A stretch of DNA of 64,000 bases. Origin: Gracilinanus agilis (taxonomy: Eukaryota). Where the stretch lies: NCBI RefSeq assembly GCF_016433145.1, contig NC_058133.1, positions 389,635,456 to 389,699,455 on the forward strand. The letters are read 5' to 3'. A model generated the notes under the pieces. The model was not told where the DNA came from. It did no database searches and saw only the letters and a list, made by a program, of their open reading frames with translations. The position numbers and the translations under genes are program-made. Below, one piece after another: positions 8,852 through 62,629 of the stretch (its first letter is position 1; every line of letters starts with the position of its first letter).

Positions 8852-9433
8852 TAGATGCATCAGTTAAATAACAATACCTTCATATAGTTAAAATATGTAC
8901 TTGTTGACAAAGTCCTTAAATTTAGAAAATGAAGAGAATTTCAGGCAGCATGGCAGGCCAGAATGGGAATATATTTGCGATCACCTTGGCATTTTACAGT
9001 TCTTCAGATCAAAGAAGTACAAGATGGCTCTGAAAACGTGTGAGCTTCTGAAGCATTTTTTCCCAGGAAATGCCTAGAGAACTAAGATTCTATAGCTGCT
9101 TTATAATTTCATCATAGCCGAGTTAGAGGAGAGTTCTTTGTCCTCCCAAATAGTTCTAAAAGAAGTGAGATAAGGAGGAATGTACACAATACTGAAGGTT
9201 ATTTTAGGTTAACTTGAGGTTAACTGAAATTTAAATACCTGCAGGTGGTTTCATTTGCATTTGCTTTATTTTTCATGTTTCTTAACTAAGATTATCTACA
9301 TGATAATCAAAAATATTATTTCTTTATTGTAATGGTCAGTAACCACAGATTCTAGATTTCTGACAATTACAAAAACAAAACAAACATCTTTTGAATTTTC
9401 TCCTCTTTTCTCCTACTTCAATAGGATAGATGA

Positions 9434-9644
9434 CATGTTGGTGAACCTGTGGCACACATGCCAGAAAATGCTGGCGTGGGCTTCTCCCTTCCCCCTCTCC
9501 ACATACTTGCATCACTTGCCCCTTTGCCCAGCAGCCCAATGGGAGGACTTCCTCCCTCTCTTGTCTGGGATAAGGTGGGGGGCTCACATGTGGCATGAGG
9601 GTTGCAATTTGGGCACTTGGTCTCTAAAAGTTTCACCATCATTG
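9434..9644. mobile_element. Non-autonomous hAT (Charlie-group) MITE, ~210 bp
   Basis: Left end CATGTTGGTGAACCT. Right end AAGTTTCACCATCATTG, whose reverse complement is CAATGATGGTGAAACTT. Both resemble TIR CAGTGATGGCGAACCT. TSD degraded. Confidence 0.75.
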
Positions 9645-10014
9645 GATTAGAGCTAAGAAAAGAAGAAATTATATCAATGAAACTGAATGGAAAATTTAAC
9701 ATTCAAACACAAGACTCAAGGGAAGTAGATATGAAAGTGTTATCATTAGAGACTTAAGGTTTGTGTTTACATTTCTAAATAGTAAGATAATATATTTAAA
9801 TCCAAAGAACTTTATTAGAGCAGTTAGAAAGAGTCTATACAGACAGAGGGCATAAGAATGACTCCACGATGTTGGAATGATCTCTAAAAATAAAGGAGTA
9901 AGAAAGAGGGTGTACTGGAGAAGGAAAAAGGGAGAGGTAGAATGGGAAAAAATTGCTCATATAAAAAGGGTGCACAAGGAAGAGATTTTATAGTAGAGGG
10001 CACACACACATACA

Positions 10015-10058
<44 letters not shown>

Positions 10059-10180
10059 TATACACTTAGAGGGCATAGAAGTTTATCTTACCCAGTAGGG
10101 AAACAGGAGGGGAGAGGAGTAAGAAATAAAGATGAAAGGTGATAAAAGGGAAGGAAGATTAAGGAAGTCAATGGTCAGAA

Positions 10181-10184
<4 letters not shown>

Positions 10185-10238
<54 letters not shown>
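10185..10238 (+). repeat. (AG)27 microsatellite inside the L1 inter-ORF region
   Basis: Perfect run. A (CA)-rich run lies nearby at ~10000-10065. Confidence 0.95.
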
Positions 10239-10241
<3 letters not shown>

Positions 10242-10933
10242 AAGGATAGATGGAACAAAATAGGATGGAGGAAAATACAATAGTAATCCTAACTATGAAT
10301 GTGAATGGGATGAGTTCATCCATAAACTGGAAGCAGATAGCAGAATGAAGACTATAGTCCTCTAGTATGTTTAGAAGAGAAATGTTTGAAATGAAAAGAT
10401 ATAACTAGAGTTAAAATAAAAGGCTGACAGAATCTTTTATGTGTCTGAACTGAAATTTTTAAAAAAAGGCAGAGACAGGAATAATGATTTCAGAGAGAGC
10501 AAAACTATAAGTAGACCTCAAAAGAGAGCCAAGGAAACTACATTTTGTTAGAAAGAACCATGAACAAACTAATATGGAAAAAACTTATAGTAAGTTTTTT
10601 GATAAAGGCCTTACTTCTCAAGTATATAGGGAACTGAGTTAAATTTATATAAATAAGAGACATTTCCAAATTGATAAATGGTCAATGGAAATTAACAGGC
10701 CATTTTCAGAAGGTGAAATCAAAGTCATCTGTAGTGATATTAAAAAAATGCTCTAAATCGTTATTGATTAGAGAACTGCACATTTAAACAATTCTGAGGT
10801 GACCTTATACCAATCAGAACTGACAAATGTTCGAGGAGACAAGGGAAAAACAACCTGATGGAGTTGTGAACTGATCTAACTATTGTGAAGAAAAATTTAG
10901 AAATATATCCAAAGAATTTTAAATTGCTCATAC

Positions 10934-11834
10934 TGTTGTGGGAGAGCTTTGGGGTGAAACCCCAAGTTTGGGACAGGTTACCCTTTTCAAGAATGCAACA
11001 CTCCAAAACTTAGCTTAAAAATAAATAGAGAAATGTATTAATTTGGAAGTGTGTGAAGGGAATCCTTTCCTAGGATCACAGATGGGATGCTGTCCTGCCT
11101 GCATCCCTGCATTCCTGGAGCTACATCACTTACATCACCAAGGTTGGTCATCTAGTTACATCATCTAGCATAGGTTACCTGACTCTGAACCTGATCAGGA
11201 CATGAATTTGCTGAATGTGAAAGGAGAGTTTAAAAGGTTTGAACAAGGAAGTGCTTGCTCTCTGTCCCTCTTGTCTGGCCAAGGGGAGCTGCTGCTGGAG
11301 GTCATGATGGGAATACCTAAGTGGGAGCTAGATTAGGCTATTTTATTCTTATCTTTCTATCTATTTCTCAACTTTTACCTATCCAAGTGATTCTAATAAA
11401 CTTTATTAAATTCTAAGGACCAGTCTCTTAATTTTAATTCTTACAGAAGTCATGTTGAAAATGTGGGAGATAATGTGCAAGGGTAGACACTGCCTCCCAG
11501 AGGAAATGGAGTATAGGGATTTTATACCCCTTGGACATTAGGGATTACAGGATAAAAAAAGGGGGTTGGGGTGATTCAGGAATGAGGTAATTGGTTTAGG
11601 TTGTGGGTATAAGGAATGATCTGTGGAATTCAAAGAATGATTAGATTAGATACCACCCAATGCTAATCAGAGTGGAACCAGGAAGTGCATATCTATATTA
11701 ATTGAAGATCTAGGGGAAAGTTCAAAGGGGGGGGGGCGGGTTTGCTCCTAGAAAGGAATTTCTTATGACTCCTTTTGACCTAGAACACTTATGGAGTTCT
11801 GGGGTGTATATGGGAAACCTATCCCCCCATATCA
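10934..11834 (-). mobile_element. Outer solo LTR (~500 bp net), split by an inner LTR
   Basis: Minus strand starts TGATATGGGGGG at 11834, has a TATA-like GGTATAAAATCCC near 11520 and ends CCCACAACA at 10934. 4-bp TSD ATAC at 10930-10933 and 11835-11838. Confidence 0.8.
11050..11445 (+). mobile_element. Inner solo LTR, 396 bp
   Basis: Starts TG at 11050, AATAAA at 11395-11400, ends TTACA at 11445. TSD GAAG at 11046-11049 and 11446-11449. Confidence 0.8.
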
Positions 11835-19324: not shown

Positions 19325-20220
19325 AGTCCTTTTCTCTTGCTTTGAACTCTTTCTAATATAGGCCTAGTGGTGGTATTGCTAAGTCAAAGGGTAGGTATGA
19401 ATAGTTTTATAGTGCTTTGGGCATAGTTCCAAATTGTTCTCCAGAATAACTGAACTAGTTTACAACTCCACCAATAGTGCATTTGTGTCACAGTTCTTCC
19501 TTATTACCACCTATATTTGTCATTTTCCTTTTGTCTTGGTTGCCAATTTGATAAATGTTAAGGTGGTATCCAAGAGTTTTGTTTTGTTTTTGTTTTTTTT
19601 TTAACCCTTGTACTTCGGTGTATTGTCTCATAGGTGGAAGATTGGTAAGGGTGGGCAATGGGGGTCAAGTGACTTGCCCAGGGTCACACAGCTGGGAAGT
19701 GGCTGAGGCCGGATTTGAACCTAGGACCTCCCGTCTCTAGGCCTGACTCTCACTCCACTGAGCTACCCAGCTGCCCCCCAAGAGTTGTTTTAATTTGTGT
19801 TTCTCTAGTCAGTTGTGATTTAGAAAAAAATTTCATGTAACTTTTGATAGATTTGATTCCTTCTTCTGAATATTGTTAGTTCGCCTCCTTTGAGAATTTT
19901 TCAACTGGGGAATGACTGATTTTTATAAATTTGGCTAAATTCCCTATATGTTTGAGAAATGAAGCTTTAACAGATAAATTTGTTGCAGTTTTCTCCCTTG
20001 TTTTTTGTTCTCTTTCTAATATTGGTTGCACTAGTTTTGTTTGTGCAAAAGCTTTTTAGTTTCATGTAATCAAAATTATTTTCCTTTCTATAACCTCCTC
20101 TGTCTCTTGTTTGGTCATAAACTCTTTCATTATGCATAAATTAAATAGATAAATTTTTCTAAGCTTCTCTAATTTACTAACTCATCTGTTTACTTTAACC
20201 TTATTTTAGTATATGGTATG
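19325..20220 (-). mobile_element. L1 ORF2 3' fragment, antisense
   Basis: Reverse complement of L1 C-terminal sequence (GCTTTGGGCATAGTTCCAAATTGTTCTCCAGAAT...CAACTCCACCAATAGTGCATT). Confidence 0.85.
19579..19777 (-). mobile_element. Young SINE1_Mdo-type SINE inserted in the L1
   Basis: Near-identical to 14939-15119. TSD core CCAAGAGTT on both sides. Confidence 0.95.
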
Positions 20221-21537
20221 AATGTTGGCTATGGATGGTATTTTTCATTGTGAGTCCCTTGGGGTTGTCTCAGATCCATGCACTGCTGATAATATTAAAT
20301 TATGGTCTCAAACTTTATGGATAATATGGACTGTTTTTCTCTGACTTTTTTCCCTTTTATTTTAAAACCTCTTTTATTAGCTGTATTATAGAGGCAGTGT
20401 AGTATATTGGTGAAGTAGCCAGCCTTGAAACCAGAAAGAACTGATTTCAAGTCCTGTCTCTGATACTTATTGGCTGTGTCATTCTGGGCCAGTCATTTAA
20501 ACTCCTCAGTGCTCTAGGCTTTTCCTTAAATGTTAAGTTGGAGAGAAGCAACTGAACTATCAGGTACTTTTCTCATCTGTTCTTATTCCTATCCTTGACC
20601 TTGCAAGATTCTAGGCAAATAAATTCTTACCACTCCTCCTTAGATAAACCCATCCCTAGCAAAAAGTTCATTCCCCCTCACCCCTCTATTTTAGCATTAT
20701 CACACACATTGGCAATAAAAACATGAACAAAGGTGAGAGCTCTATAAGTGCTTTGATTCAGGAGGCAAAGCAAATGCATTATTATTAATAATATTTTGTT
20801 GAATTTTAGTTGTCATTGTTATTTCCATTAATTAAAATGTAAATAGTTTAGTTTTTAAAAATTTTATTCAAAAACTTACTTCATCTCTGGTAGTGATTGT
20901 ACTTAACATTATTTGATAATTAAAAAAGAAATACAATAAAATCAATCATTTGATTCAACTTAACCATTTTCAAAATAACTCACAAATCACAATAATTTTT
21001 AAAATCATCAAATTGAAATACACAATGCTCAATAATTCTTGTTAGGTCTTTTCTTCTTAGCACTCACACCTCTTCCCTAAGGGAATTTTTTCATATGGGA
21101 TGATAGCTTTCTGCTTTAAACTTTCTCTTCCTGTACTATTGAGAGACAGGAAGTCCTTTAGAGAGATGAGAAGTGAAAAAATAAAACAAGGGAAAGATAT
21201 AAATTCCTGTAAGGTACCTTTAGTGATTATTTCAAACACTGATTCATTGAGAACTATAGGATATCATAAGATAAAGTGTTTGAAAATAATGTCTTCTAAT
21301 TAGTACATACAATCAACATTTTTTTTTAAATTTCTGGTTTGATGGATTCTTTCTGATGATTTTGAAAGGCAGTATTTATACAGATTAGACATTTTGTGTA
21401 AATTTGTCCTTCTTAATGCAGCATATCCAAATTCCAGCAATTACATATCAGGAGAAAATGAAGATTTTTTTCTATATTGAAAAGACATTGAATTCTTATC
21501 TTTACTTCTGAGTGTTTAATTGGATTTGGCTTATTTA

Positions 21538-21548
21538 TATCATTTTAG
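21538..21548 (+). promoter_or_regulatory. Candidate splice acceptor of a 5' UTR intron for TAAR locus 1
   Basis: TATCATTTTAG|CAAC, 42 nt before the ATG. ATTTTAGCAAC recurs before locus 4. Confidence 0.45.
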
Positions 21549-21590
21549 CAACTAGAGAATTAGAAATTGAGAATTTCAGAAAAGAAAGAT

Positions 21591-22610
21591 ATGGCCTCTC
21601 CTGACCAACAATCTGGAGATGTTCAGTTCTGCTTTCAGAACATCAATGGATCCTGTGTGAAGACTCCACGGTCTCTTGGCATTCGGACTTTTCTCTATGG
21701 AATCTTGGGCTTTATCACAATTCTTACAGTAGGTGGAAACATTGTGGTAATTTTTTCAATTACATATTTCAAACAGCTTCACTCTCCTTCCAATTTTTTG
21801 GTTGCCTCATTGGCCTGTGCTGATTGTTCTTTGGGATTGACTGTACTTCCCTTCAGCACATTACGGTCTGTTGAAACATGTTGGTACTTTGGGGACAGAT
21901 TCTGCAAGTTTCACTCCAGCTTAGATATCTGCTTTTGTCTAGCATCTATGTTTAATTTGTGCTTTATCTCTGTTGATAGATACATGGCTATTACTGACCC
22001 TTTGCTTTACCCAATCAGATTCACAATATCTTTGTCAGGGGTGTTCATAGCTCTTAGCTGGACTTCTGCCTTCTTGTATAGTTTCTCATTACTGTACACT
22101 GGTGCAAACGAAGAAGGACTGGAAGAAGTAGTGCGTGAGTTCCATTGTGAAGGAAATTGTCAAATATTCTTTAACAAAACTTGGGTAATTATATCTTCTC
22201 TCCTTTATTTTGTGCCGTTCTGCATCATGATTTGGTTGAATAGCAAGATTTTTGCTGAAGCTAAACGACAAGCTAGAAAGATTGAACAAATGGGTAACAC
22301 AATGTCTTCAGAGGGTGACAAGGTATCAAAAAGAGAGAGAAAAGCAGCTGTGACTCTGGGAATAGCAGTAATGGCTTTCTTGCTCTTCTGGTCTCCTTAT
22401 TTTATCACTGTAATAATTGATACTTTTTTGGGTTCCACAACCCCACCTCTTGCTTTTGACATTATGATTTGGTTTGCATACTCAAACTCTGCCATCAACC
22501 CTTTGATATATGCTTTCTTTTACCCTTGGTTTAGGAAAGCCATCAAAGTGGTCTTAAGTTGCAAAATTCTTTGGATAAATTGCTCTTCCATGAACTTATT
22601 TTCAGAATGA
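21591..22610 (+). CDS. Trace amine-associated receptor, divergent member of the TAAR6-9 clade, 339 aa, intact ORF
   Basis: Seven TM segments, N-terminal CFQNINGSC, Asp3.32 (HSSLDICFC), DRY, and TAAR fingerprint [16 protein letters not shown]. First ATG is 21591; the ORF track starts at a TTG. Confidence 0.93.
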   Translation: MASPDQQSGDVQFCFQNINGSCVKTPRSLGIRTFLYGILGFITILTVGGNIVVIFSITYFKQLHSPSNFLVASLACADCSLGLTVLPFSTLRSVETCWYFGDRFCKFHSSLDICFCLASMFNLCFISVDRYMAITDPLLYPIRFTISLSGVFIALSWTSAFLYSFSLLYTGANEEGLEEVVREFHCEGNCQIFFNKTWVIISSLLYFVPFCIMIWLNSKIFAEAKRQARKIEQMGNTMSSEGDKVSKRERKAAVTLGIAVMAFLLFWSPYFITVIIDTFLGSTTPPLAFDIMIWFAYSNSAINPLIYAFFYPWFRKAIKVVLSCKILWINCSSMNLFSE

Positions 22611-24792
22611 AAAATCTACTTCAGGAGTTCCCAGTTAAAAAAGCCTTGGACTCAGAGTCAGGAAAGTTGGTTTCATAATCTAGAAATGCCACTTACCAGC
22701 TGAATGAGCATGGACAAGTCATTTAATGTCTCTTGATCTCAATTTTCTCATATGTAATGTGATCAGGTTGGATTATATCATCTCAAAGGTTCTTTCCTGT
22801 ACTGACATTGTATGATTCAATGTCTATCTCATACACAGGTTTTTTTGTTTTGTTTTATTTTTCCAAATATGAGATTTTATTGTTTTCAGGAACTCCTAGT
22901 GAAATTGGAAGTTAGTGCCTCTTCTGAAGTTTACAGTCTTTTAAAGTTATTCATAGTACTAGTAGATTAAGTGATTTACCCATGATCATGTATTTAATAC
23001 ATGTCAGAGGTGGGATGTGAGCTCATGTTTTTCTAACTCTGAGACCAGGTCCTACAACATACTAAATTGTTGTGAGGTAATCTACATAAAAATGCTTTGT
23101 ACATTTTAAATCATTATACAAATTATGATTTTAGACTAACTTTATTACTCTTTCCAAAAACTTTGACACTAAGCACCAACCCTGGTACTTTTGCTTATAG
23201 AATGCTGAAATATATTTCCTGTATCATATTTATTATCTCAATCCTCTTTATTAATTATTACTGGATATCATTCTCAAGATATTAATTAAGGTTTTTAATA
23301 AATTCTGCAGAATGTCAATGAATAAAGTCAAGAAAAATGAAATTTCTCTTCATGTATTTTATTATATTAATAATGCTAATAAAATTCATTTGCTATTCTT
23401 AATCACAAAAAAGAGTATTTTTTTCAAAATTTTCATTCCCTTTTTAGAGCAAAGAGTAACAAGATTGTTAAAAGAATTGATTGAAGTCATGAAGGTAAAC
23501 TTGTGTTGGAAAGTATAACAAACTATACAAAGTTCTATCATTGTCATTAAATCATTAAGCATCTTCTTCAGTTTTTCCCATCATTTCCCATCATACAAAA
23601 TGAAATCTTCCTATCCCCTCTTTTGCTAAACACCTCTGTTTTCTTTGTAGTCTTTTTCTATAAGATCTAAGCTTGGGAAGTAAGAGGGGAGGGGTAAGAG
23701 AAGATATTTGCTACCTTTGTTTATGCCTTGACAAACAGCATAAGAAATTGTATTTGGGACACAGGTAGTTTATTTTTTTAAGAATGGATCTTTAAAAAAT
23801 TATTTATCCATTGTATTTTTATATCATATTTTTCCCTGAATATGCCTCCCCTGCTCTAACTAGATAACACCTCCTTGTAACAAAAGTTTAAAATTGGGGA
23901 AACAGCACCTTTTTAAAAAAGAAAAAAAATCTTTATCCACACTCAGAAATACTGTTGTGGACCCATTGTTTAGAACCTCTATAATAAAGGGAGGAAAGGG
24001 CACTTTCTCAATTTTTCTCATTTATTATTTTCTTTTAAAGTAACTTTCTGTTAATGATTGCAAAGTATTTAACAGGATATATATGATGGAGTCTTCTGTC
24101 TCAATCCAACACCTCTCTCTTAATACACATATAGATAAATATATATAAATTTGTATATATATCCATATAAACTTTTATATATGTAATATACAATATCTGA
24201 CTGTTTACTCCTGTTTACTATCAAATAACTCACTTCATCTATTTTTCCACATATAAGGATGGATTACTATAAATCTGTGCCTTTTAATTTTATTGTGGAT
24301 AGAAAGCCTATCCTTCTACTACATTCCCATCTTCAGCAATTTCACAAACCCATGTTATTTTGGGATTCTTGCACATAGAGTTTAATAGCAATGAAGTCAA
24401 AGAAGGCATTAACCTGACAAAGATTTTCAAGTTATTTTCTGGGACAAGTTCTCTGACTTCTCTGAACAAAAATACACCAAGTGACCTGGTGGGAAAGACT
24501 CCTGGGTTTAGAGTCAGAAAACAAATTAAGGATTTAGATGTATTCTAGAATATCAGTAAATGAAATTGGAAATGAAGTTCTTCTTTTAGAATCCTGATAC
24601 CACATATTACCTGTGTAGATCATCTTTGAAGTTCCTGCCAGAGTTAAAACTACAATCCTTTGGAATCATTTCTGGAGTTAAAGTTCTATAAGCAGCTGAA
24701 TATTGTTGTCTTTGGAAATGCTTATCCTATAGATTCAGGCAAAGAAGCAGTAGAAATAAAGGAATATGGGGGGGGAAGGGTTCCAGGAATAT

Positions 24793-25154
24793 NNNNNNNN
24801 NNNNNNNNNNNNNNNNNNNNNNNNNNNNNNNNNNNNNNNNNNNNNNNNNNNNNNNNNNNNNNNNNNNNNNNNNNNNNNNNNNNNNNNNNNNNNNNNNNNN
24901 NNNNNNNNNNNNNNNNNNNNNNNNNNNNNNNNNNNNNNNNNNNNNNNNNNNNNNNNNNNNNNNNNNNNNNNNNNNNNNNNNNNNNNNNNNNNNNNNNNNN
25001 NNNNNNNNNNNNNNNNNNNNNNNNNNNNNNNNNNNNNNNNNNNNNNNNNNNNNNNNNNNNNNNNNNNNNNNNNNNNNNNNNNNNNNNNNNNNNNNNNNNN
25101 NNNNNNNNNNNNNNNNNNNNNNNNNNNNNNNNNNNNNNNNNNNNNNNNNNNNNN
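24793..25154. other. Assembly gap, 362 N, abutting an (AT)n run
   Basis: Run of N followed by (AT)n to ~25191. Confidence 0.99.
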
Positions 25155-25195
<41 letters not shown>

Positions 25196-28125
25196 TGTCT
25201 TTAGCATTAGCAGAACAAAAGAGTGAGTAATAAAGGAAAGAAAAGGACAAAATCACTTTTTGAAGAGTGTAAATATATATGTATTTGTACATATATATTT
25301 GTATCTCTCTCTCTTTAAATATATACATATATTTAAATTCACACACGCACATATCCATCTTAGGACAATAATAGATTTAGAACTGGAAAGGATTTCAGAG
25401 GTGATTGCATCCAAATCTATTATTTTATAAGTGAAAAAAACAGAGGCCAAGAGAAATTAAGTGTTTTAGTCTAGTCACAAAGCTTAAATGTCTGGGTTAG
25501 AATTTGAACCCAGTTTTCCTGATGCTAAGCCCACCATGTTGCCAATAGCTATCTAGTGACAACAACACATTTTAAATAACACTATGGGAGTGAATAAGGG
25601 AAGCTTTTGTCATATGGGAAGGAATCAAATCAGAGAATGGTGCCTGAATTTCATATATTGTGTGTATGTGTGTGAATAAGATCATAAGATCATAGTCTTA
25701 GAGATGAAAGAAGTGGTTAGGTTAACTGACCATTAAGGTTTCTTTCATCTCTAAGACTCTCCCTTGAAATTATTCTGTGTTTTCACAGCTCTTGTTCATT
25801 CCTTTAAAATCCCTATGTCTAAAATATCCCAAATTCTCCTCTTAACCTCTTTAATTTTTCTTTTAACATCCAACTCAAATGCTACCTTCTCCATAAAGGA
25901 CTCTTGGGACTTCCCTGTTGATTGTCACATTCCTCCATTGGAGTTCATATAAAACTATTTTTTGGTGCCCAATAATACCCCTTTCATTTAATGTTGTTTA
26001 TTACCCACCTAGACTATAAGCACACTGGGAAAGGGATTGTATCTTATCTAAATTTTACATCTTTAGTTTCTAGCCCAATATTACACACATAGTACATGTT
26101 TAATAAATTAATTGATTCTAATTCAGAGTTTACAATAACTATCATATTGTAGAGAATTATAGGGCTGACAGTTTGGATGAATGAATAATAATTGTCAACA
26201 TTTATGTTACGATTACTGGGTGTCAGAAATTATGCTAAGCACTTTGTTGTTATGACTTCATTTGATCCTCACAACAAATCCTGCAAGGTAAGTGCAATTA
26301 TTATTCCCATTATAGAGATGAGAATAGGGAGGTAGACAGAGGTTAGGTGACTTGCCCAAGGTCCCACCACCAGTAAGTATCTCAAGCTAGATTTAAATCT
26401 TCTTGACTCCAAGTCTGGTGCTCTATCCATGGTACTTCCTAGTTGCCTAGAGTAGAAAGAGCAAAAGTGAATGAGAATCCTGGTTCACAGTGGGAAAGAA
26501 AATTTCAGTTCTTTTCTATTTTTGAGCATTATACTTCCTACCCTGGAAGAAATGACACAACTGAGCTGAAATGAGAATAAAGCAAGAATATTGGTTTCCC
26601 TGGGAGACTGAAATATTTCTATTCATACAAAGACAACATGCAGCTAATATATTGCTTTGCCTAAATGAAGAAAGAAGAAATATGAATTTGTGTTTGATGA
26701 TAACATGATCAGAGCAGTAAACTAAGATTACTTGGGCAAGAATGTAGAGGATGTATTGTACAGAAGAGGCAATAGAGGTGGGAGAACCAGGTAGGAAGAC
26801 TTTTTTTTAATGGTACAGGTAAGAAGAGAAACGGTTCTGAATTAGGGTCAGTCTAGGATCCCCAGAAATAATGGTGCAATAAGAATATTGCTCCAGTTCA
26901 CCCTAATTGAGACTCATTTGCCTGCTACTAGTTTTAAACCAAGGTGATCTCTACAATTGAGTAGTTAGTGGTTAAGTTTGAGTTTAAGGCTTTCTCCTTA
27001 TTGTGTAAATCTTCTGAAGTGAAAGTTATACTCTAATGAAAGAGTGGAAAGTTAGCCTCAAACCTTGTGGTTTACTGTGATATTAAAATGATAAACTGGA
27101 CATCCAGTGAAGGAAAATCAGGATGGTGAAAGTCCCTGAATTTATGATATATATTTGTTAAAGGAGCATCTGTTGAAAGAGCTGAAATTTAGCTTGGAGA
27201 AAAGGAGGGCCAGAGACAGACATGATAGCTACCTTCCAGGATTTGAAAGACAATCATTTGGAAAATGAATTAGATTTGTTATGTCTGATAACAGAATGAG
27301 AGAGGGAGCAATGAGTGGAAGTCACAAAGAGGCAAATAAGGATTCACTTAAAGAAAAATTTCCTTTCAATTAAAACTATCCCAAAGTGGAATAGTTTACT
27401 TTGGGACATAGTTTCCCCTAAAAGTCTCCATGGAGAAGCTGGTTGACTCCTTGGTAGGCTTATTGTAAATGGATTCTTCTTTAGGATGACCACTGAGGTC
27501 TTTTCTGACTCTAAAATGATGCTATGATTCTATGCTTATTTATATGAAACTATGCTTAGTTCTTTTATCTGATATTATTTATTTTCTGTAAATCATGTCA
27601 TGGAACTAGGCTGAGCAAATAATAGCAGAACAACTACCTTTTACTTCCAAGTTAAAAAAAAAATCTTATTAACAATGACTATTAAGAATAAACTTAGTCC
27701 TCACACCTTATACTATAGGGATTTCACAACAGCAGTGAGGGGAAGATTTTTTTTTTCTCTTTAGAGTATGAGTACTTTATCTTTGATGCTAAGATGATGA
27801 CTCAGGGGAAATCACTTTTTAAATAAAACCCTTCTATTGGGCAACCCACTCACATGCATCTCAAGTCACAGCTATTCTGGACAAAGAAGTTTACAGAAGG
27901 TAAATAATGAAAAAGAACCATTTTCCATGAATAGTAAATTATATTTTCTAGAATTTATAAATGTGCTTTTAGCTATTTAGGCATTTAGTAAATTTACTTA
28001 TCTTAGAACAATTTAGTTTCTAAATATACCAAAAGATGGGAATAATTTTTGGGTGTCAAATAATTGATATATAGACGTAATAAATAATTGGCAAAAAAAA
28101 TCGTGTTAACTTCTCATTTATGAGA

Positions 28126-28182: not shown

Positions 28183-29229
28183 ATGACCATCGATTTGTCT
28201 CAACCAGCAGCTGTGCAGCTCTGCTATGAGAATGTGAATGGATCTTGCATCAAAACCCCTTACTCCCCAGGACCTAGAGCCATCTTGTATGCTGTGCTTG
28301 GCTTTGGGGCTGTGCTGGCAGTATTTGGCAACTTGCTGGTCATCACTGCCATTCTTCACTTCAAGCAGCTGCACACACCTACAAACTTCCTCATTGCCTC
28401 CTTGGCCTGCGCCGATTTTTTAGTTGGGGTGACTGTGATGCCCTTCAGTACAGTGAGGTCTGTGGAAAGCTGCTGGTACTTTGGGGAGAGTTACTGTAAA
28501 TTTCACACCTGTTTTGATACTTCCTTTTGCTTTGCATCTCTCTTCCATTTGTGTTTCATCTCTATTGATAGATATATTGCTGTCACTGACCCTCTGGTCT
28601 ATCCGACCAAATTCACAGTGCCGGTTTCGGGGATATGTATTGCCCTCTCCTGGTTCTTCTCAGTGACATACAGCTTTTCTATTTTTTACACAGGGGCCAA
28701 TGTTGAAGGGATAGAAGACTTGGTCATTGCACTCACCTGTGTAGGAGGTTGTCAGGCTCCACTGAATCAGAAATGGGTTTTACTCTGTTTTCTTTTATTC
28801 TTTATACCCACAGTTGCCATGGTTGTAATATACGGCAAGATTTTTCTGGTGGCTAAACAGCAGGCTAGAAAGATAGAAAGTACCGGCAACCAAACCCAAG
28901 CTTCTGCAGAGAGCTACAAGGACCGGGTGGCCAAAAGGGAGAGAAAGGCTGCTAAAACCCTTGGCATTGCTATGGCTGCCTTCCTTGTGTCCTGGTTGCC
29001 ATACATTATCGATGCAGTAATTGATGCTTATATGAATTTCATAACTCCTGCTTATGTCTATGAAATCTTGGTGTGGTGTGTTTACTACAACTCAGCTATG
29101 AATCCCTTGATCTATGCCTTCTTTTACCCTTGGTTTCGGAAAGCAATAAAACTGATTGTGAGCGGTAAAGTCTTAAGGAATGATTCTTCAACAATGAATT
29201 TATTTACTGAAGAAGCAGATATAGATTAA
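28183..29229 (+). CDS. TAAR9: Trace amine-associated receptor 9, 348 aa, intact
   Basis: Diagnostic TAAR9 stretches: [104 protein letters not shown]. Same length as human TAAR9 when started at MTIDLSQ. Confidence 0.95.
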
Positions 29230-43079: not shown

Positions 43080-43760
43080 TGTTTCATCTCTATTGATAGA
43101 TATATTGCTGTCACTGACCCTCTGATTTATCCAACCAAGGTCACAGTGCCCATTTCAGGGATATGTATTGCCATATCCTGGGTCTGTTCAATAACGTACA
43201 GTTTTTCTCTCTTTTACACAGGGGTCACTGATGATGGGTTGGAAGAACTGGTCATTGCTCTCAGTTGTGTGGGAGGTTGCCAGGCTGCAGTGAATCAAGA
43301 CTGGGTTCTTATTGGATTTCTTGTGTTCTGTATACCAACAATTGCCATGCTTATTATCTATGGCAAAATTTTTTTAGTGGCTAAACAACAAGCTAGGAAG
43401 ATAGAAAGTAGTAGCAACCAAGCTCAGGCTTCTGCAGAGAGCTATAAAGAAAGAGTAGCCAAACGAGAGAGAAAGGCTGCTAAAACATTGGGAATTGCTA
43501 TGGCTGTGTTTCTTGTCTGCTGGCTGCCATATTACATTGATTCAATAATTGATGCTTATATGAATTTCATAACTCCTGCTTATGTTTATGAGATCTTGGT
43601 GTGGTTTGTTTACTACAACTCAGCTATGAATCCTTTGATCTATGCCTTCTTTTACCCTTGGTTTCGGAAAGCAATAAAGCTCATTGTGAGTGGCAGAATC
43701 TTGAGGAATGATTCTTCATCAATAAATTTGTTTTCTGAAGAAGTGGAAATACACAACTGA
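43080..43760 (+). pseudogene. TAAR7-like / TAAR9-related receptor lacking its N-terminus to mid-TM3; the remaining 226 codons are open
   Basis: Frame begins CFISIDRY at 43080, immediately after a single N (43079) joined to a MIR-like flank. No stop until TGA at 43758-43760. Closest paralogue in the window is locus 4. Confidence 0.8.
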
Positions 43761-50620: not shown

Positions 50621-52350
50621 GGAGAAAGTCACTTAATAATACTAGACTTCAGTTTCCTAATCTATAAAAATGAAATGAAAGGAGTTGAACTAGGTAATCT
50701 GTAAGGTCTTTTCCAAATTGAAGTCTCTGATTCAGCCATTCCCGCTAAAGCTATATTTGAGTTCACTATTTTTCTTCTGTCAGATTGACTTTTATGTAGG
50801 CTCCCATAATCATAGTTTTGAGGTTACTTTTTACTTTTCTTTCTCCCTTACCTCTAATATTCATTTATGTTCAGATTTGATTGAACCAACATGTAAATTT
50901 CTATTTGCAAATATTTGACAGGTGGTACCTAAAAAATATCTACGTACATATTTTATAAGACATTTTAAAGCTTAATCTGCATTATTAACATTGTCTTTCT
51001 CAGAAATAATGAAAAAAAAAATGTGAAGGATGGGGGTCTAGCAGTACCAGATCTTAAACTGTACTATAAAGCAGCGGTCATCAAAACAATATGGTAATGG
51101 CTAAGAAACAGAAGTGTGGATCAATGGAATAGATGAGAGGTAAATTATCTCAGCAAGCTAGTGTTAGATAAACCCAAAGATGCCAGCTATTGTGACAAGA
51201 AAGCACTATTTGACAAAAACTGCTGGGTAAATTGGAAAACAGTATTAGAAAAATTGGGCTTAGATAAATATCTTACACCAAGATAAATTAAAGATGGGTA
51301 AATGACAAATATAAAGAGTAAAATCATAAATAAATTAGGTCAACATAGAATAGTATACCTGTCATATCTGTGGGAAAGGAAGGAATTTAAGATGATGCAA
51401 GGGAAAACATTATAAAATATAAACTGAATGACTTTGATTATATCTAATTAAAAAGTTTTTGTACAAACATAATCAATGCAATCAAAATTAGAAGGAAAGC
51501 AACAAACTGGAGAAATAGTTTTAAAACAAAACTCTCTGACAGCTTCCGGTTAAGATGGCGGCAGAGTAAGGAGCAGCTGCTCGATCTCTCCTAACCGAAG
51601 CATACAGGACTCCTCAAGGGGACATAAAAAGGAATCCAGACGAACGAAGGAACCCCACAACAGGGCGCAGTGTTGAAGGTACGCAGAATAGGGGCATTTC
51701 CACGCTATAAAGGGGCAAAATAGCTCTCACTAAAACGTGAGAGGAAAAAGCCCCTCCCCCACCACCCCACACCGCACACCTCGCACAATGCCAAGGCCAA
51801 AGCACAAGAGTGAAAACAGGACTGGGGCAACCAGATAATCATTGGCAGCCCCAGGGCTTGTACCTGTATGCTGTAAGAGGAGGGACCCCAGGTGGCTGGG
51901 GGCACACACGGACTTTCCCCAAGGGTCCACGTGGGTGAAGGCACAGCTTCGGGCTGGGCCAAAGATCTCTAACACCCGGACTTTCCCGAGCACCTGAAGG
52001 CATCGCCTCAGGTGAGAATAAAGATCTCCATCCCACTGACTTTCCCTAGCTTCTGCGTGCATGAAGGCAGTGCCCTAAGAGTGTCTGCACTGGCAAAGGC
52101 AGCGGGGTTCCTAGGCTTGAATAAAGATCTCCAGCCCAGGCTTGGACCTCCAGTGAGGACCCGGTGAGGACCGGAGCTCGGCAGTGGAAGCAGCCCCAAA
52201 GACTGCTGAAGGAGCCTCCGGCAGAGGGGCAGACTGGGGTGTACCAGGAGACCTGACCCCTACGACAAGGAGACCAGAGGCCCCGGGAGCTTAGAAAATG
52301 CAGGCAGACCCTGAGTGTGAAGACAAAGCAGAAAAGGGGTGGGGCTAACA

Positions 52351-53328
52351 ATGGCAAGCCAAGAAATCCAGAGGAAGAAAAAGATTATCAAGAAAAACTC
52401 TGGAACACTCAACAACTTTTACACAAAGAAAATCCAGGCAACAGAGGACAAACAAGTATCCAAACCTTCCCAAAACAAGGAAAACTGGTCACAAGTTATA
52501 GAAGAGTTCAAAACTGAGATTTTGAAGAAGATGGAAGAGATCTGGCAAGAAAATAACAGTTTAAAAGGCAGAATTTCACAATTGGAAAGTGAGGCTCAGA
52601 AATCAAATGAACTGATAAGCAAATTGAACACCAGAAATGACCAGATTGAAAAGGAAAACCAGTCCCTAAAGGCTAGAATTGAACAATTAGAATCCAATGA
52701 TCTCTCAAGACAACAAGAACAAATAAAACAAAGTCAAAAGACTGAAAAAATAGAAGGAAACATGAAATATCTCAATGAGAGAGTGACAGACCAAGAAAAC
52801 CAGTCTAGAAGAGACAATTTGAGAATTATTGGTCTTCCAGAAAAGGCAGAAATTAATAGAAACTTGGACTCCATACTTAAAGAAATTATTCAGCAAAATT
52901 GCCCTGAAGTTCTACAACAAGAGGGCAATATAGACATTGAAAGGATCCATAGATCACCCTCTACACTGGACCCAGAAAAGCCAACACCCAGAAATATAAT
53001 AGCGAAATTTAAGAGTTTTCAAGTAAAAGAAAAAATCTTACAAGAAGCCAGAAAGAGACAATTCAAATATCAAGGAGCACCAATCAGGATCACACAGGAT
53101 CTGGCAGCCTCCACGCTAAAAGACCGCAAGGCTTGGAACACAATATTCAGAATGGCAAGAGAGATGGGTCTTCAGCCACAGATCAACTACCCATGGAAAC
53201 TGACTATATACTTCCAGGGGAAAGTATGGGCATTCAACAAAATTGAAGAATTCCAAGTTTTTGCACAAAAGAGACCAGGACTAAATGGAAAGTTTGATAC
53301 CCAACCACAAAAACCAAGAGAAACATGA
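52351..53328 (+). CDS. L1 ORF1p, intact, 325 aa
   Basis: ATG at 52351, coiled-coil heptads, RRDNLRIIGLPE, IERIHRSP, PRNIIAKF, IRITQDLAASTLKDRKAW. Confidence 0.9.
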   Translation: MASQEIQRKKKIIKKNSGTLNNFYTKKIQATEDKQVSKPSQNKENWSQVIEEFKTEILKKMEEIWQENNSLKGRISQLESEAQKSNELISKLNTRNDQIEKENQSLKARIEQLESNDLSRQQEQIKQSQKTEKIEGNMKYLNERVTDQENQSRRDNLRIIGLPEKAEINRNLDSILKEIIQQNCPEVLQQEGNIDIERIHRSPSTLDPEKPTPRNIIAKFKSFQVKEKILQEARKRQFKYQGAPIRITQDLAASTLKDRKAWNTIFRMAREMGLQPQINYPWKLTIYFQGKVWAFNKIEEFQVFAQKRPGLNGKFDTQPQKPRET

Positions 53329-54055
53329 AAAGGTAAATAAGAAACAGAGGGAAAAGAAAGAAAACTTATAATTCTTTAAATTTGACTCTTTAAGGGCTTA
53401 AATAAGATCTAATTATCTGTATTAATAGGTGGAGAAATGTTATGTATAATTCTCTGTAGTGAACTCTATTGACTAGTATAATATTCGCTATTATAGCAAC
53501 CAGAAGAATAATTCACAGGGAGAGGATAGGATACTAAATGGTCTAAGATGACAGAGAGGGTGGGAAAGAGGGGGGGGGGGGAATAGTAGGGGACACCAAG
53601 AAAAATCCGAGTAAATAAGAAAAATAGGATATTCTATTACACACAAAGAGGGCATGGGAAGGGGAGGGGATAAATACTATCATAAGAAGGAGAGGAAGAG
53701 AGCATTAAGAGGGAATAATCAAACCTTACTCTCAGTATAATCAACCCGGAGAGGGAAGAGTAGCATTATTATCCATTCGGATAAAAAAAAAAACAAAACT
53801 CTATCTAACCCTACTGAGAAAGTCAGAAGGGACAAAACAAAGGGAACAGGGGAGTGGGGAGGTCAAAAAAGGGAGGGGAGAAGATGGGGGAGGGAATTCA
53901 ATAGGCCTTTAAAAATAAAAAGAGGGGAATAACAAGGGAGGGGGCAGAAAGGGAAGTCAATCAAGGGAGGGGATAAGGGACACTGGCTCAAAGCAAACCA
54001 CTGGTTAAAAGAAAATCATGTAAGAGAAGGGGTGGGTCTAGAGGAAGATACAAAA

Positions 54056-57000
54056 ATGTCAGTGAATGAACAACTGATAATTGTAACTCTGAATGTGAAT
54101 GGGATGAACTCGCTCATAAAATGGAAGCAAATAGCAGAGTGGATCAGAAACCAAAATCCTACCATATGTTGTCTACAAGAAACACATATGAGGCGGGTAG
54201 ACACACACAAGTTTAAGGTTAAGGGCTTGAGCAAAATCTTTTGGGCGTCAAATGAAAAAAAGAAGGCAGGAGTGGCTATTATGATTTCTGACAAAGCCAA
54301 AGTAAAAATAGATATGATTAAAAAAGACAGGGAAGGCCATTACATCCTGATTAAATGCAGTATAAACAATGAGGAAATAACACTGCTCAATATGTATGCA
54401 CCAAGTGGCATAGCACCCAAATTCATAAAGGAGAAACTGGCAGAGCTCAAGAAGGAAATAGATAGTAAAACCATACTAGTGGGAGATCTAAATATTCCTC
54501 TTTCAGATCTAGATAAACCAAATCAAAAAATAAATAAGAAAGAGGTAAGAGAGGTGAATGAAGTCCTAGAAAAATTAGATTTAATTGATATGTGGAGAAA
54601 AATAAATAGGGACAAAAAGGAATACACCTTCTTTTCAGCTGCGCATGGTACATTCACAAAGATTGACCATGTAATAGGACATAGAATCATTGCAAACAAA
54701 TGCAAAAGAGCAGAAATAATAAATGTAACCTTCTCAGATCATAATGCAATAAAAATAATAATTAGTAAGGGCACATGGACAGGCAAATCAAAAACCAATT
54801 GGAAATTAAACAATATGATTCTCCAAAACCAATTTGTCAAAGAAGAAATCATAGAAACAATCAACAATTTCAATGAAGAGAACAACAATGATGAGACACC
54901 CTACCAAACTATGTGGGATGCAGCAAAGGCAGTACTCAGGGGGAAATTTATATCCCTGAGTGCATATATTAACAAATTAAGGAGGGCAAAGATTAATGAA
55001 TTGGGTATGCAACTCAAAAAATTAGAAAGTGAACAAATTAAAAACCCTCAGATGAAAACTAAATTAGAAATACTAAAAATTAAGGGAGAAATTAATAAAA
55101 TTGAAAGTAAAAGAACTATTGAATTAATAAATAAGACTAGAAGCTGTTATTTTGAAAAAACAGATAAAATAGACAAAGTGCTGGTCAATCTAATAAGAAA
55201 AATGAAAGAAGAAAACCAAATTGACAGTATCAAAGATGAAAAGGGAGACCTTACCTCCAATGAAGGGGAAATTAAGGCAATCATTAAAAACTATTTTGCC
55301 CAATTATATGGCAACAAATATAACAATTTAGGAGATATGGATGAATATCTACAAAAATACAAATTGCCTAGATTAACAGCAGAAGAAAGAGAATACCTAA
55401 ATAATCCCATAGCAGAAATAGAAATTGAACAAGCCATCAAAGGACTCCCTAAGAAAAAATCACCAGGACCTGATGGATTCACAAGTGAATTCTATCAGAC
55501 ATTCAAAGAGCAACTAATCCCAATACTATACAAATTATTTGATATGATAAGCAAAGAAGGAGTCCTACCAAATTCCTTTTATGACACAAATATGGTACTG
55601 ATTCCAAAGCCAGGTAGACCAAAAACAGAGAAAGAAAACTATAGACCAATCTCCCTAATGAACATAGATGCAAAAATCTTAAATAGAATATTAGCAAAGA
55701 GACTCCAGCAAGTAATTAAGAAGATCATCCACCATGATCAGGTGGGATTTATACCAGGAATGCAAGGATGGTTCAACATTAGGAAAACCATCCACATAAT
55801 TGACCATATCAACAGTCTAACAAACAAAAATCACATGATTATCTCAATAGATGCTGAAAAAGCCTTTGATAAAATACAGCATCCATTTCTATTGAAAACA
55901 TTGAAAAGTATAGAAATAGAAGGACCCTTCCTAAAAATAATAAACAGTATATATCTAAAACCATCAACAAGCATTATATGCAATGGGGATAAATTAGAAG
56001 CCTTCCCAATAAGATCAGGAGTGAAACAAGAATGCCCATTATCACCTCTATTATTCAACATTGTACTAGAAACACTAGCAATAGCAATCAGAGAAGAAAA
56101 AGAAATTGAAGGTATCAAAATAGGCAATGAGGAGACTAAGCTATCACTCTTTGCAGATGATATGATGGTCTACTTAAAAAACCCTAGAGAATCAACTAAG
56201 AAGCTGGTAGAAATAATCAACAACTTTGGCAAAGTTGCAGGATACAAAAAAATGCACATAAATCATCAGCATTTCTATTTTTCTCCAACACATTAGAACA
56301 GCAAGAGGTAGAAAGAGAAACACCATTTAAAATCACCCTAGACAATATAAAATACTTAGGAATCTATCTACCAAAACAAACACAGCAATTATACGATAAC
56401 AACTACAAAACATTTTCCAAAAAAAATAAAACTAGATCTCAACAATTGGAAAACCATTAATTGTTCATGGGTAGGATGAGCTAACATAATAAAAATGAAC
56501 ATTCTACCCCAATTAATTTACCTATTTAGCGCCATACCTATCAAGCTACCAAAAAACTTCTTTACTGAATTAGGAAAAACTATAACAAAGTTCATTTGGA
56601 ATAACAAAAGATCAAGAATATCAAGGGAAATAATGAAAAAAAATGTGAAGGAAGGGGGCCTAGCAGTACCAGATATTAAACTATACTATAAAGCAGCAGT
56701 CATCAAAACAATATGGTACTGACTAAGAGATAGAAGGGAGGATCAGTGGAATAGACTTGGGGTAAATGACATCAGCAAGACAGTGTATGATAAACCCAAA
56801 GAGCCCAACTTTTGGGAAATGAATCCTCTATTTGACAAAAACTGCTGGGAAATTTGGAAAGCAATATGGGAGAGATTAGGTCTAGATCAACATCTCACAC
56901 CCTACACCAAGATAAATTCAAAATGGGTGAATGAAATGCTGGTGGAGCTGTGAACTGATCCAACCATTCTGGCTGGCAATTTGGAATCATGCTCAAAGGG

Positions 57001-61548: not shown

Positions 61549-62629
61549 ATGGAGTTACATGAAGATTCACATAGGGACGAAGGGATCAACAGTTCCTCCC
61601 AACTTATGGCTGTGCAGTTCTGTTTTGAGAATGTGAATAAATCCTGCATCAAAACCACATACTCCCCCTTTCCTCGAATGATTCTCTATGTGGTCTTTGG
61701 CTTTGGGATTCTGCTGGCAGTATTTGGCAACTTGCTGGTCATCACTGCCATTCTTCACTTCAAGCAGCTGCACACACCTACAAACTTCCTCATTGCCTCC
61801 TTGGCCTGTGCTGACTTTTTGGTTGGACTCACTGTGATGCCCTTCAGCATGGTGAGGTCAGTGGAAAGTTGCTGGTACTTTGGGGAGAGTTTCTGTAAAT
61901 TTCACACCTGTTTTGATGGATCATTTTGCTATTCTTCTCTCTTCCATTTGTGTTTCATCTCTATTGATAGATATATTGCTATCACTGACCCTCTGATTTA
62001 TCCAACCAAGGTCACAGTACGCATTTCAGGGATATGTATTGCCATATCCTGGGTCTGTTCAATAACATACAGTTTTTCTCTCATTTACACAGGGGTCAGT
62101 GATGATGGGTTGGAGGATCTGGTCATTGCTCTCAGTTGTGTGGGAGGTTGCCAGTCTGCAATGAATCAAGACTGGGTTCTCACTGCATTTCTCTTGTTTT
62201 TAATACCAACAGTTGCTATGCTCATCATATATGGCAAAAATTTTTTAGTGGCTAAACAGCAGGCTAGAAAGATTGAAAGTATCAACAGCCAAATGCAGGC
62301 TTCTGCAGAGAGCTATAAGGATAGAGTAGCCAAAAGAGAGAAAGGCTGCTAAAACATTAGGGATTGCTATGGCTGTGTTTCTTGTCTGCTGGCTGCCATA
62401 TTTCATTGATACGCTAATTGATGCTTATGTGAATTTCATAACTCCAGCTTATGTCTATGAGATCTTATTGTGGTTTATTTATTATAGTTCGGCTATGAAT
62501 CCTTTGATCTATGCCTTCTTTTACCCTTGGTTTCGGAAAGCAATAAAGCTCATTGTGAGTGGCAGAATCTTGAGGAATGATTCTTCATCAATGAATTTAT
62601 TTTCTGAAGAAGTGGAAATCCACAACTGA
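61549..62629 (+). pseudogene. TAAR7-like receptor with a 2-bp frameshift in ICL3 (would be 360 aa if repaired)
   Basis: Extended N-terminus and TM3 [13 protein letters not shown] as in rodent TAAR7s. AAAAGAGAGAAAGGCTGCTAA at 62332-62352 lacks one AG relative to loci 2 and 3, giving TAA at 62350. TM6-TM7 continue in the shifted frame to TGA at 62627-62629. Confidence 0.88.

Follow-up and report, generated by a model that had tools for sequence, protein, structure and literature searches.

The open reading frame at 21591-22610 on the + strand of the window, i.e. of the whole 64,000-nucleotide stretch of Gracilinanus agilis DNA analyzed here, is with a probability of about 0.88 the didelphid orthologue of a receptor lineage that has been published both as TAAR M1 and as TAARR1, a gene which predates the amniote split and has been kept in marsupials, turtles and crocodilians while being lost in eutherians. 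The gene, referred to as M1 in the following, is a class A GPCR belonging to TAAR clade II and probably single-copy. It is real, intact and under constraint, confirming the observation at the base of the preceding sequence-only reading.

An intact receptor gene beyond TAAR9

The intact 339-aa TAAR claimed in that reading is represented by an ATG-to-stop frame of 339 codons without internal stops, formed by a single uninterrupted coding exon and followed downstream by three TAAR9-type loci on the same strand, which is the arrangement of a TAAR cluster. In the alignment, the start methionine coincides with that of all marsupial orthologues, each likewise comprising 339 aa. The protein matches the Pfam family 7tm_1 at 2.8e-56 between residues 49 and 307, characterizing it as a rhodopsin-type seven-helix receptor. 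All motifs quoted beforehand were recovered from the translation, namely EEVVREFHCEGNCQ in ECL2, WVIISSLLYFVP in TM5 and AFDIMIWFAYSNS in TM7, as were the shortening of ICL3 by four residues compared to the neighboring TAAR9 and the residues D3.32 (corresponding to D112), I3.33, L3.37 and S5.43. Besides, the class A core is present with N1.50, D2.50, the cysteines at 3.25 and in ECL2, DRY, W4.50, P5.50, F6.44, W6.48 and NPxxY, and the amine-binding set D3.32/W7.40/Y7.43 (D112, W294 and Y297) is kept. The TM7 fingerprint of TAARs, NSxxNPxx[Y/H]xxx[Y/F]xWF (Guo et al., 2022; PMC8890504), is intact in the form N299 S300 A I N303 P304 L I Y307 A F F Y311 P W313 F314.

Since it groups with TAAR9 from pig, bat and lemming, the neighboring gene (Table 1) is a true TAAR9, to which the M1 protein is 56% identical. 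The distance of 5.6 kb in the same orientation given previously agrees with a measured spacing of 5,572 bp, both genes being located on the + strand. Within the spacer, at 24660-25360, a run of N (24793-25154) is found with a TA-rich simple repeat on its 3′ side, the latter translating as repeated Ile-Tyr; due to the N run, the true spacing is uncertain. When using both proteins as tblastn queries against the window on both sides of 19660-19703, TAAR-like sequence was detected only at 21591, 28183, 43080-43751 and 61597-62620, with none upstream of 21591. The proposed position outside TAAR9 at the cluster end is thus borne out, as no other TAAR-like sequence of the window lies farther out than M1. 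The first of the two incomplete TAAR9-like copies starts right after a single N (43079), so that its missing 5′ third may be a matter of assembly and not a deletion, and in the second one the ORF 61549-62352 stops early. Two of the TAAR9-type loci are separated by a LINE-1 element (52339-56296, +), whose ORF1 is open and contains domains resembling L1 RBD and dsRBD, and whose ORF2 is represented by a piece of 754 aa with endonuclease and reverse transcriptase.

The surroundings of M1 can be aligned with the corresponding Sarcophilus locus (L001), where a single collinear blastn alignment connects 20599-23051 of the window with 8990-11430 at 78% over 2.5 kb, the aligning flanks amounting to about 1 kb upstream and 1.5 kb downstream. 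Petaurus has the layout of the window, with a 7TM gene of 348 aa located 8.7 kb downstream of M1 in the same orientation. In the five marsupial assemblies examined, the 10 kb preceding M1 are free of called genes. The window itself does not show the STX7 flank, nor was a CpG-island-like 500-bp stretch detected anywhere in it.

Table 1. Location of M1, its upstream flank and the TAAR9-type loci in the window, with the underlying evidence.
Feature	Position	Strand	Description and evidence
Upstream flank, collinear with Sarcophilus M1 locus	20599..21590	+	blastn; orthologous flank, promoter at most putative
TAAR M1 / TAARR1 orthologue	21591..22610	+	single-exon CDS, 339 aa plus stop; ORF, Pfam, orthologues, dN/dS
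TAAR9, intact neighbor	28183..29229	+	348-aa ORF; with Sus, Pteropus and Lemmus TAAR9, support 100/99
TAAR9-like copy, 3′ two-thirds	43080..43751	+	tblastn, 81% to residues 124-347 of window TAAR9
TAAR9-like copy, two reading frames, split near residue 250	61597..62620	+	tblastn, 80% and 82% to window TAAR9

Published names and phylogenetic placement

M1 had been presented as an extra gene. It is not an unrecognized one, as it agrees in position, strand, length and neighbor with the TAAR M1 already described from opossum, and RefSeq annotates it across many marsupials. Eyun et al. (2016, PLoS One) distinguished three ‘metatherian’ TAAR subfamilies, among them the single-copy TAAR M1 (PMC4786312). 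Their cluster listing starts with opossum TAAR M1 (XP_001380440, + strand, 1,021 nt), TAAR9h (+) beginning 4.5 kb after it and more TAAR9 copies coming next (PMC4786312, S2 Table). Opossum and tammar TAAR M1 are described as single-copy and, like the window gene with its length of 1,020 nt, are encoded on the + strand and placed first in the cluster directly before the TAAR9 copies (PMC4786312). The window gene and TAAR M1 fall into one marsupial clade, to which the Notamacropus orthologue (87% identity) belongs as well. The equation with opossum TAAR M1 rests on position, strand, length, neighbor and clade. By word-based protein search and cluster look-up, intact 339-aa orthologues with 86-89% identity to the window protein were obtained from seven marsupials (Sarcophilus, Antechinus, Notamacropus, Vombatus, Phascolarctos, Trichosurus and Petaurus), all named ‘trace amine-associated receptor 7a-like’ in RefSeq. 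The window contains one copy of M1 and the clusters have a single protein for each species, the wombat protein occurring on two contigs of one assembly.

The second published name stems from Guo et al. (2022, Mol Biol Evol), whose subfamily TAARR1 (‘R for reptile’) comprises in data S1 alligator TAARR1a-c and, under the label ‘Vombatus_ursinus-TAARR1’, a protein from wombat with the accession XP_027699582.1 (PMC8890504). This wombat protein (P0379) is a member of the M1 cluster, i.e. of the 90% cluster of P0003, and 88% identical to the window protein. Hence, the TAAR M1 of Eyun et al. and the TAARR1 of Guo et al. are one lineage, whereas the ‘TAARM1’ of the latter authors is a different gene (PMC8890504). 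In the accessible part of their text, the marsupial TAARR1 member is not discussed (PMC8890504), and Policarpo et al. (2024) treat TAARs by coarse subclades only, with M1 not being mentioned (PMC10869828). One lineage consequently bears three labels, ‘TAAR 7a-like’ in RefSeq, ‘TAAR M1’ in Eyun et al. and ‘TAARR1’ in Guo et al., and the practical value of the present assignment lies in tidier names and a tidier history.

In the protein search, the best matches following the marsupial orthologues are from turtles and alligators (62-66% identity). A eutherian counterpart is missing from the clade, as had been anticipated, with every eutherian TAAR reaching 60% identity at most and the best of these matches falling inside the TAAR7-type clade. 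For phylogenetic analysis, TAAR5 proteins of birds, squamates, turtles, alligator, mammals, amphibians, coelacanth and lungfish served as outgroup, together with further fish and lungfish representatives, the sole contribution of a 50%-identity representative search. In the FastTree analysis of 214 rows, M1 (three rows) and the turtle and crocodilian genes (40 rows) form a clade with an SH-like support of 99 that is sister to 88 therian TAAR6-9-type rows, and IQ-TREE under LG+C20+F+G4 (PMSF) recovered the M1-reptile clade from 100 rows with an SH-aLRT value of 99. In a careful IQ-TREE search on 50 rows, support (UFBoot/SH-aLRT) was 100/99 for M1 plus reptiles as well as for the therian block, 99/96 for the union of both with TAAR5 outside, and 100/100 for the marsupial M1 clade including the Notamacropus sequence (P0003). 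The maximum likelihood phylogeny is therefore in line with the earlier statement that M1 is not a simple TAAR5-9 orthologue, as neither the therian TAAR6-9 block (100/99) nor the TAAR5 clade (100/100) includes it.

M1 and the reptile genes also have the derived residues S5.43, S5.44, Y5.47, S6.49 and S7.44 in common. At 5.44, 5.47 and 6.49, a different residue is common to TAAR5 and the therian block, while at 5.43 and 7.44 the contrast is less uniform. Shared ancestral states alone were considered as cause of the grouping and rejected, because TAAR5 sides with the therian block against M1 and reptiles at the three former positions.

These results bear on the idea that M1 might be a metatherian invention, i.e. 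a TAAR6-9-type duplicate that originated in the stem lineage of marsupials or therians and diverged fast thereafter. Such an origin would fit the finding that among mammals M1 is restricted to marsupials, the long M1 stem branch of 0.3 changes per column in the 50-row tree, and the designation as metatherian-specific by Eyun et al. (2016), in whose study turtles and crocodilians were unsampled (PMC4786312). Nevertheless, it is very improbable in view of the 100/99 union with the turtle and crocodilian genes and the derived residues common to both. In line with this, forcing M1 onto the therian TAAR6-9 block with the reptiles outside was rejected by the AU test on the 50 rows at a cost of 21.6 lnL (p = 0.0029), and so was joining reptiles and therians with M1 outside (21.8 lnL, p = 0.0023). 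Long-branch attraction is not behind the tree either, because the reptile branches are short and the M1 and therian stems are long; it would have drawn M1 to the long therian stem or the outgroup and not to the short branches of the reptiles. Of the term ‘metatherian-specific’, as also used in the sequence-only reading, the part referring to a marsupial-only occurrence among living mammals stands, but the part referring to origin does not.

Hence, the separation of the M1/TAARR1 lineage from the ancestor of therian TAAR6-9 antedates the divergence of mammals and sauropsids, and placental mammals have lost the gene. That it is missing in eutherians, monotremes, birds and squamates was judged on protein collections and published counts (PMC4786312). 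The placement corrects the claim that the M1 subfamily arose within therians. Interpretation as an old amniote gene lost in eutherians is a modest refinement, which is absent from the accessible text of both papers (PMC4786312, PMC8890504). In Alligator sinensis, an R-type gene is located 7 kb from TAAR5 in convergent orientation, on that side of TAAR5 where therians have TAAR6-9 and the M genes. Two R-type TAAR genes were observed on KE696751.1 (L003, L005) of this species about 51 kb apart in opposite orientations, one of them convergent with TAAR5. A 335-aa gene call neighboring alligator P0031 was discarded, since it could not be translated in a single frame.

A separate observation concerns the ‘6-like’ TAARs, where marsupial sequences (Dromiciops, Phascolarctos and Trichosurus; P0058, P0091 and P0371) and eutherian ones (Tenrec, Rhinolophus and Hipposideros; P0122, P0375 and P0376) form one clade with a support of 98-99. 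Accordingly, a subfamily regarded as ‘eutherian-only’ or ‘metatherian-only’ (TAAR6 or E1 versus M2 or M3) may be common to both groups.

Constraint, activation residues and predicted function

Comparison of the window gene with its Sarcophilus orthologue resulted in dN/dS values from 0.22 (NG86) to 0.33 (YN00) at a dS of 0.25-0.34 for this one pair, demonstrating purifying selection on M1 across the deepest split among living marsupials. Asp3.32 (D112), I3.33, M3.40, a glutamate after the first ECL2 cysteine and N5.58 are each found in 8/8 marsupial M1 copies, and L3.37 in 7/8. Met3.40 and Asn5.58 correspond to residues 120 and 217 of the window protein, respectively. At position 5.58, tyrosine is present in 37/37 turtle genes, 88/88 therian TAAR6-9-type genes and 58/59 TAAR5 genes; beyond M1, asparagine was encountered in these sets in one of three crocodilian sequences (P0005 from Alligator sinensis). 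A set of 96 diverse TAAR and aminergic representatives shows Tyr (90) and Asn (3) at 5.58, and I/V/L (89) and Met (2) at 3.40. Both positions are part of the activation machinery of class A receptors, with Tyr5.58 serving as stabilizer of the active state in most of them. Their conserved exchange in M1, Y5.58N and I3.40M, is the only feature of the gene that is out of the ordinary, and suggests that the activation switch may be altered.

Deviation from the Tyr and I/V/L of nearly all representatives, i.e. loss of Tyr5.58 and Ile3.40, might also be read as a sign of decay, leaving M1 as a relic with an open frame that does not give a working receptor, and RNA sequencing runs containing the stretch were not found among the runs on record. 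This is the least probable of all readings, considering that eight marsupials representing three orders all have an intact frame of exactly 339 aa, that dN/dS versus Sarcophilus is 0.22-0.33, and that M1 retains the TAAR fingerprint as well as DRY, NPxxY, the CWxP-type W6.48 and the two cysteines of ECL2, with N5.58 and M3.40 being themselves fixed in 8/8 copies. Somewhat less improbable, yet still quite unlikely, is a functional receptor outside olfaction, comparable to TAAR1 in sensing an internal amine in brain or peripheral tissue. In favor of it, M1 appears to be single-copy and is length-stable in marsupials like the older TAAR1-5, while TAAR9, M2 and M3 around it expand in tandem. However, TAAR5 is single-copy as well and yet olfactory, all clade II TAARs studied (TAAR5-9) are olfactory receptors according to the literature, and M1 is located inside the cluster in the orientation of TAAR9.

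By analogy, M1 most likely works as other clade II TAARs do, namely in olfactory sensory neurons as a receptor by which volatile amines are smelled. The protonated amine would be held by Asp3.32 within an aromatic cage of Trp7.40 and Tyr7.43, and the signal would be transmitted via Golf and adenylyl cyclase to cAMP. As Tyr5.58 is replaced by Asn, ordinary Golf coupling of M1 is an assumption. Moreover, the pocket is unlike that of TAAR9 and TAAR5 at I3.33, L3.37, S5.43, S5.44, Y5.47, S6.49 and S7.44, and the ligand range is therefore probably different. In agreement with the description of the ligand as uncharacterized, none was found on record for M1. Alligator TAARR1a-c have been cloned for the ligand screen of Guo et al. 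(2022), being named 5.1a-c in table S2, and a ligand for them was not found in the accessible part of these data (PMC8890504).

The two fixed changes in the activation switch and the glutamate next to the disulfide cysteine of ECL2, all of them maintained under purifying selection, indicate that M1 may signal unusually. Still, unusual signaling in terms of basal activity or G-protein coupling, or ligands beyond the usual tertiary amines, in a lineage more than 300 million years old is considered a tentative and rather unlikely proposition. M1 is a conserved, probably single-copy orphan of TAAR clade II for which parallel deorphanization is possible in marsupials, turtles and alligators. Y5.58N and I3.40M pose a small, testable question on receptor activation. 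Taken together, these findings would hardly be a major surprise for specialists.

Comparison with other TAARs

The closest solved structures are those of mouse TAAR9 and TAAR7f (8itf, 8iw1 and related entries, 8pm2), both being clade II receptors about 55-58% identical to the window protein. As they agree with M1 in D3.32, W7.40 and Y7.43, in the cysteines of ECL2 and in the TAAR fingerprint, the same amine-binding mechanism is expected. In contrast, they stand on the opposite side of a duplication older than the amniote split, have other residues at 3.33, 3.37, 5.43, 5.44, 6.49 and 7.44 as well as an ICL3 four residues longer, and retain Y5.58 and I3.40. TAAR5, the trimethylamine receptor, is a single-copy gene which, like M1, is an old member of clade II, and has L3.37, F7.35, D7.36 and the TM7 stretch PP..FD..IWFAY in common with M1. 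However, it constitutes a clade of its own to which amphibians, coelacanth and lungfish contribute, shows 47-51% identity and is encoded on the strand opposite to M1 in the cluster. Closest in descent are the TAARR1 genes of reptiles (PMC8890504), sharing with the window gene the five residues at 5.43, 5.44, 5.47, 6.49 and 7.44, with the alligator genes being 62-66% identical. Unlike M1, they occur in several copies per genome, bear A/L/V at 3.33 and Y at 3.37, and mostly retain Y5.58 and I3.40.
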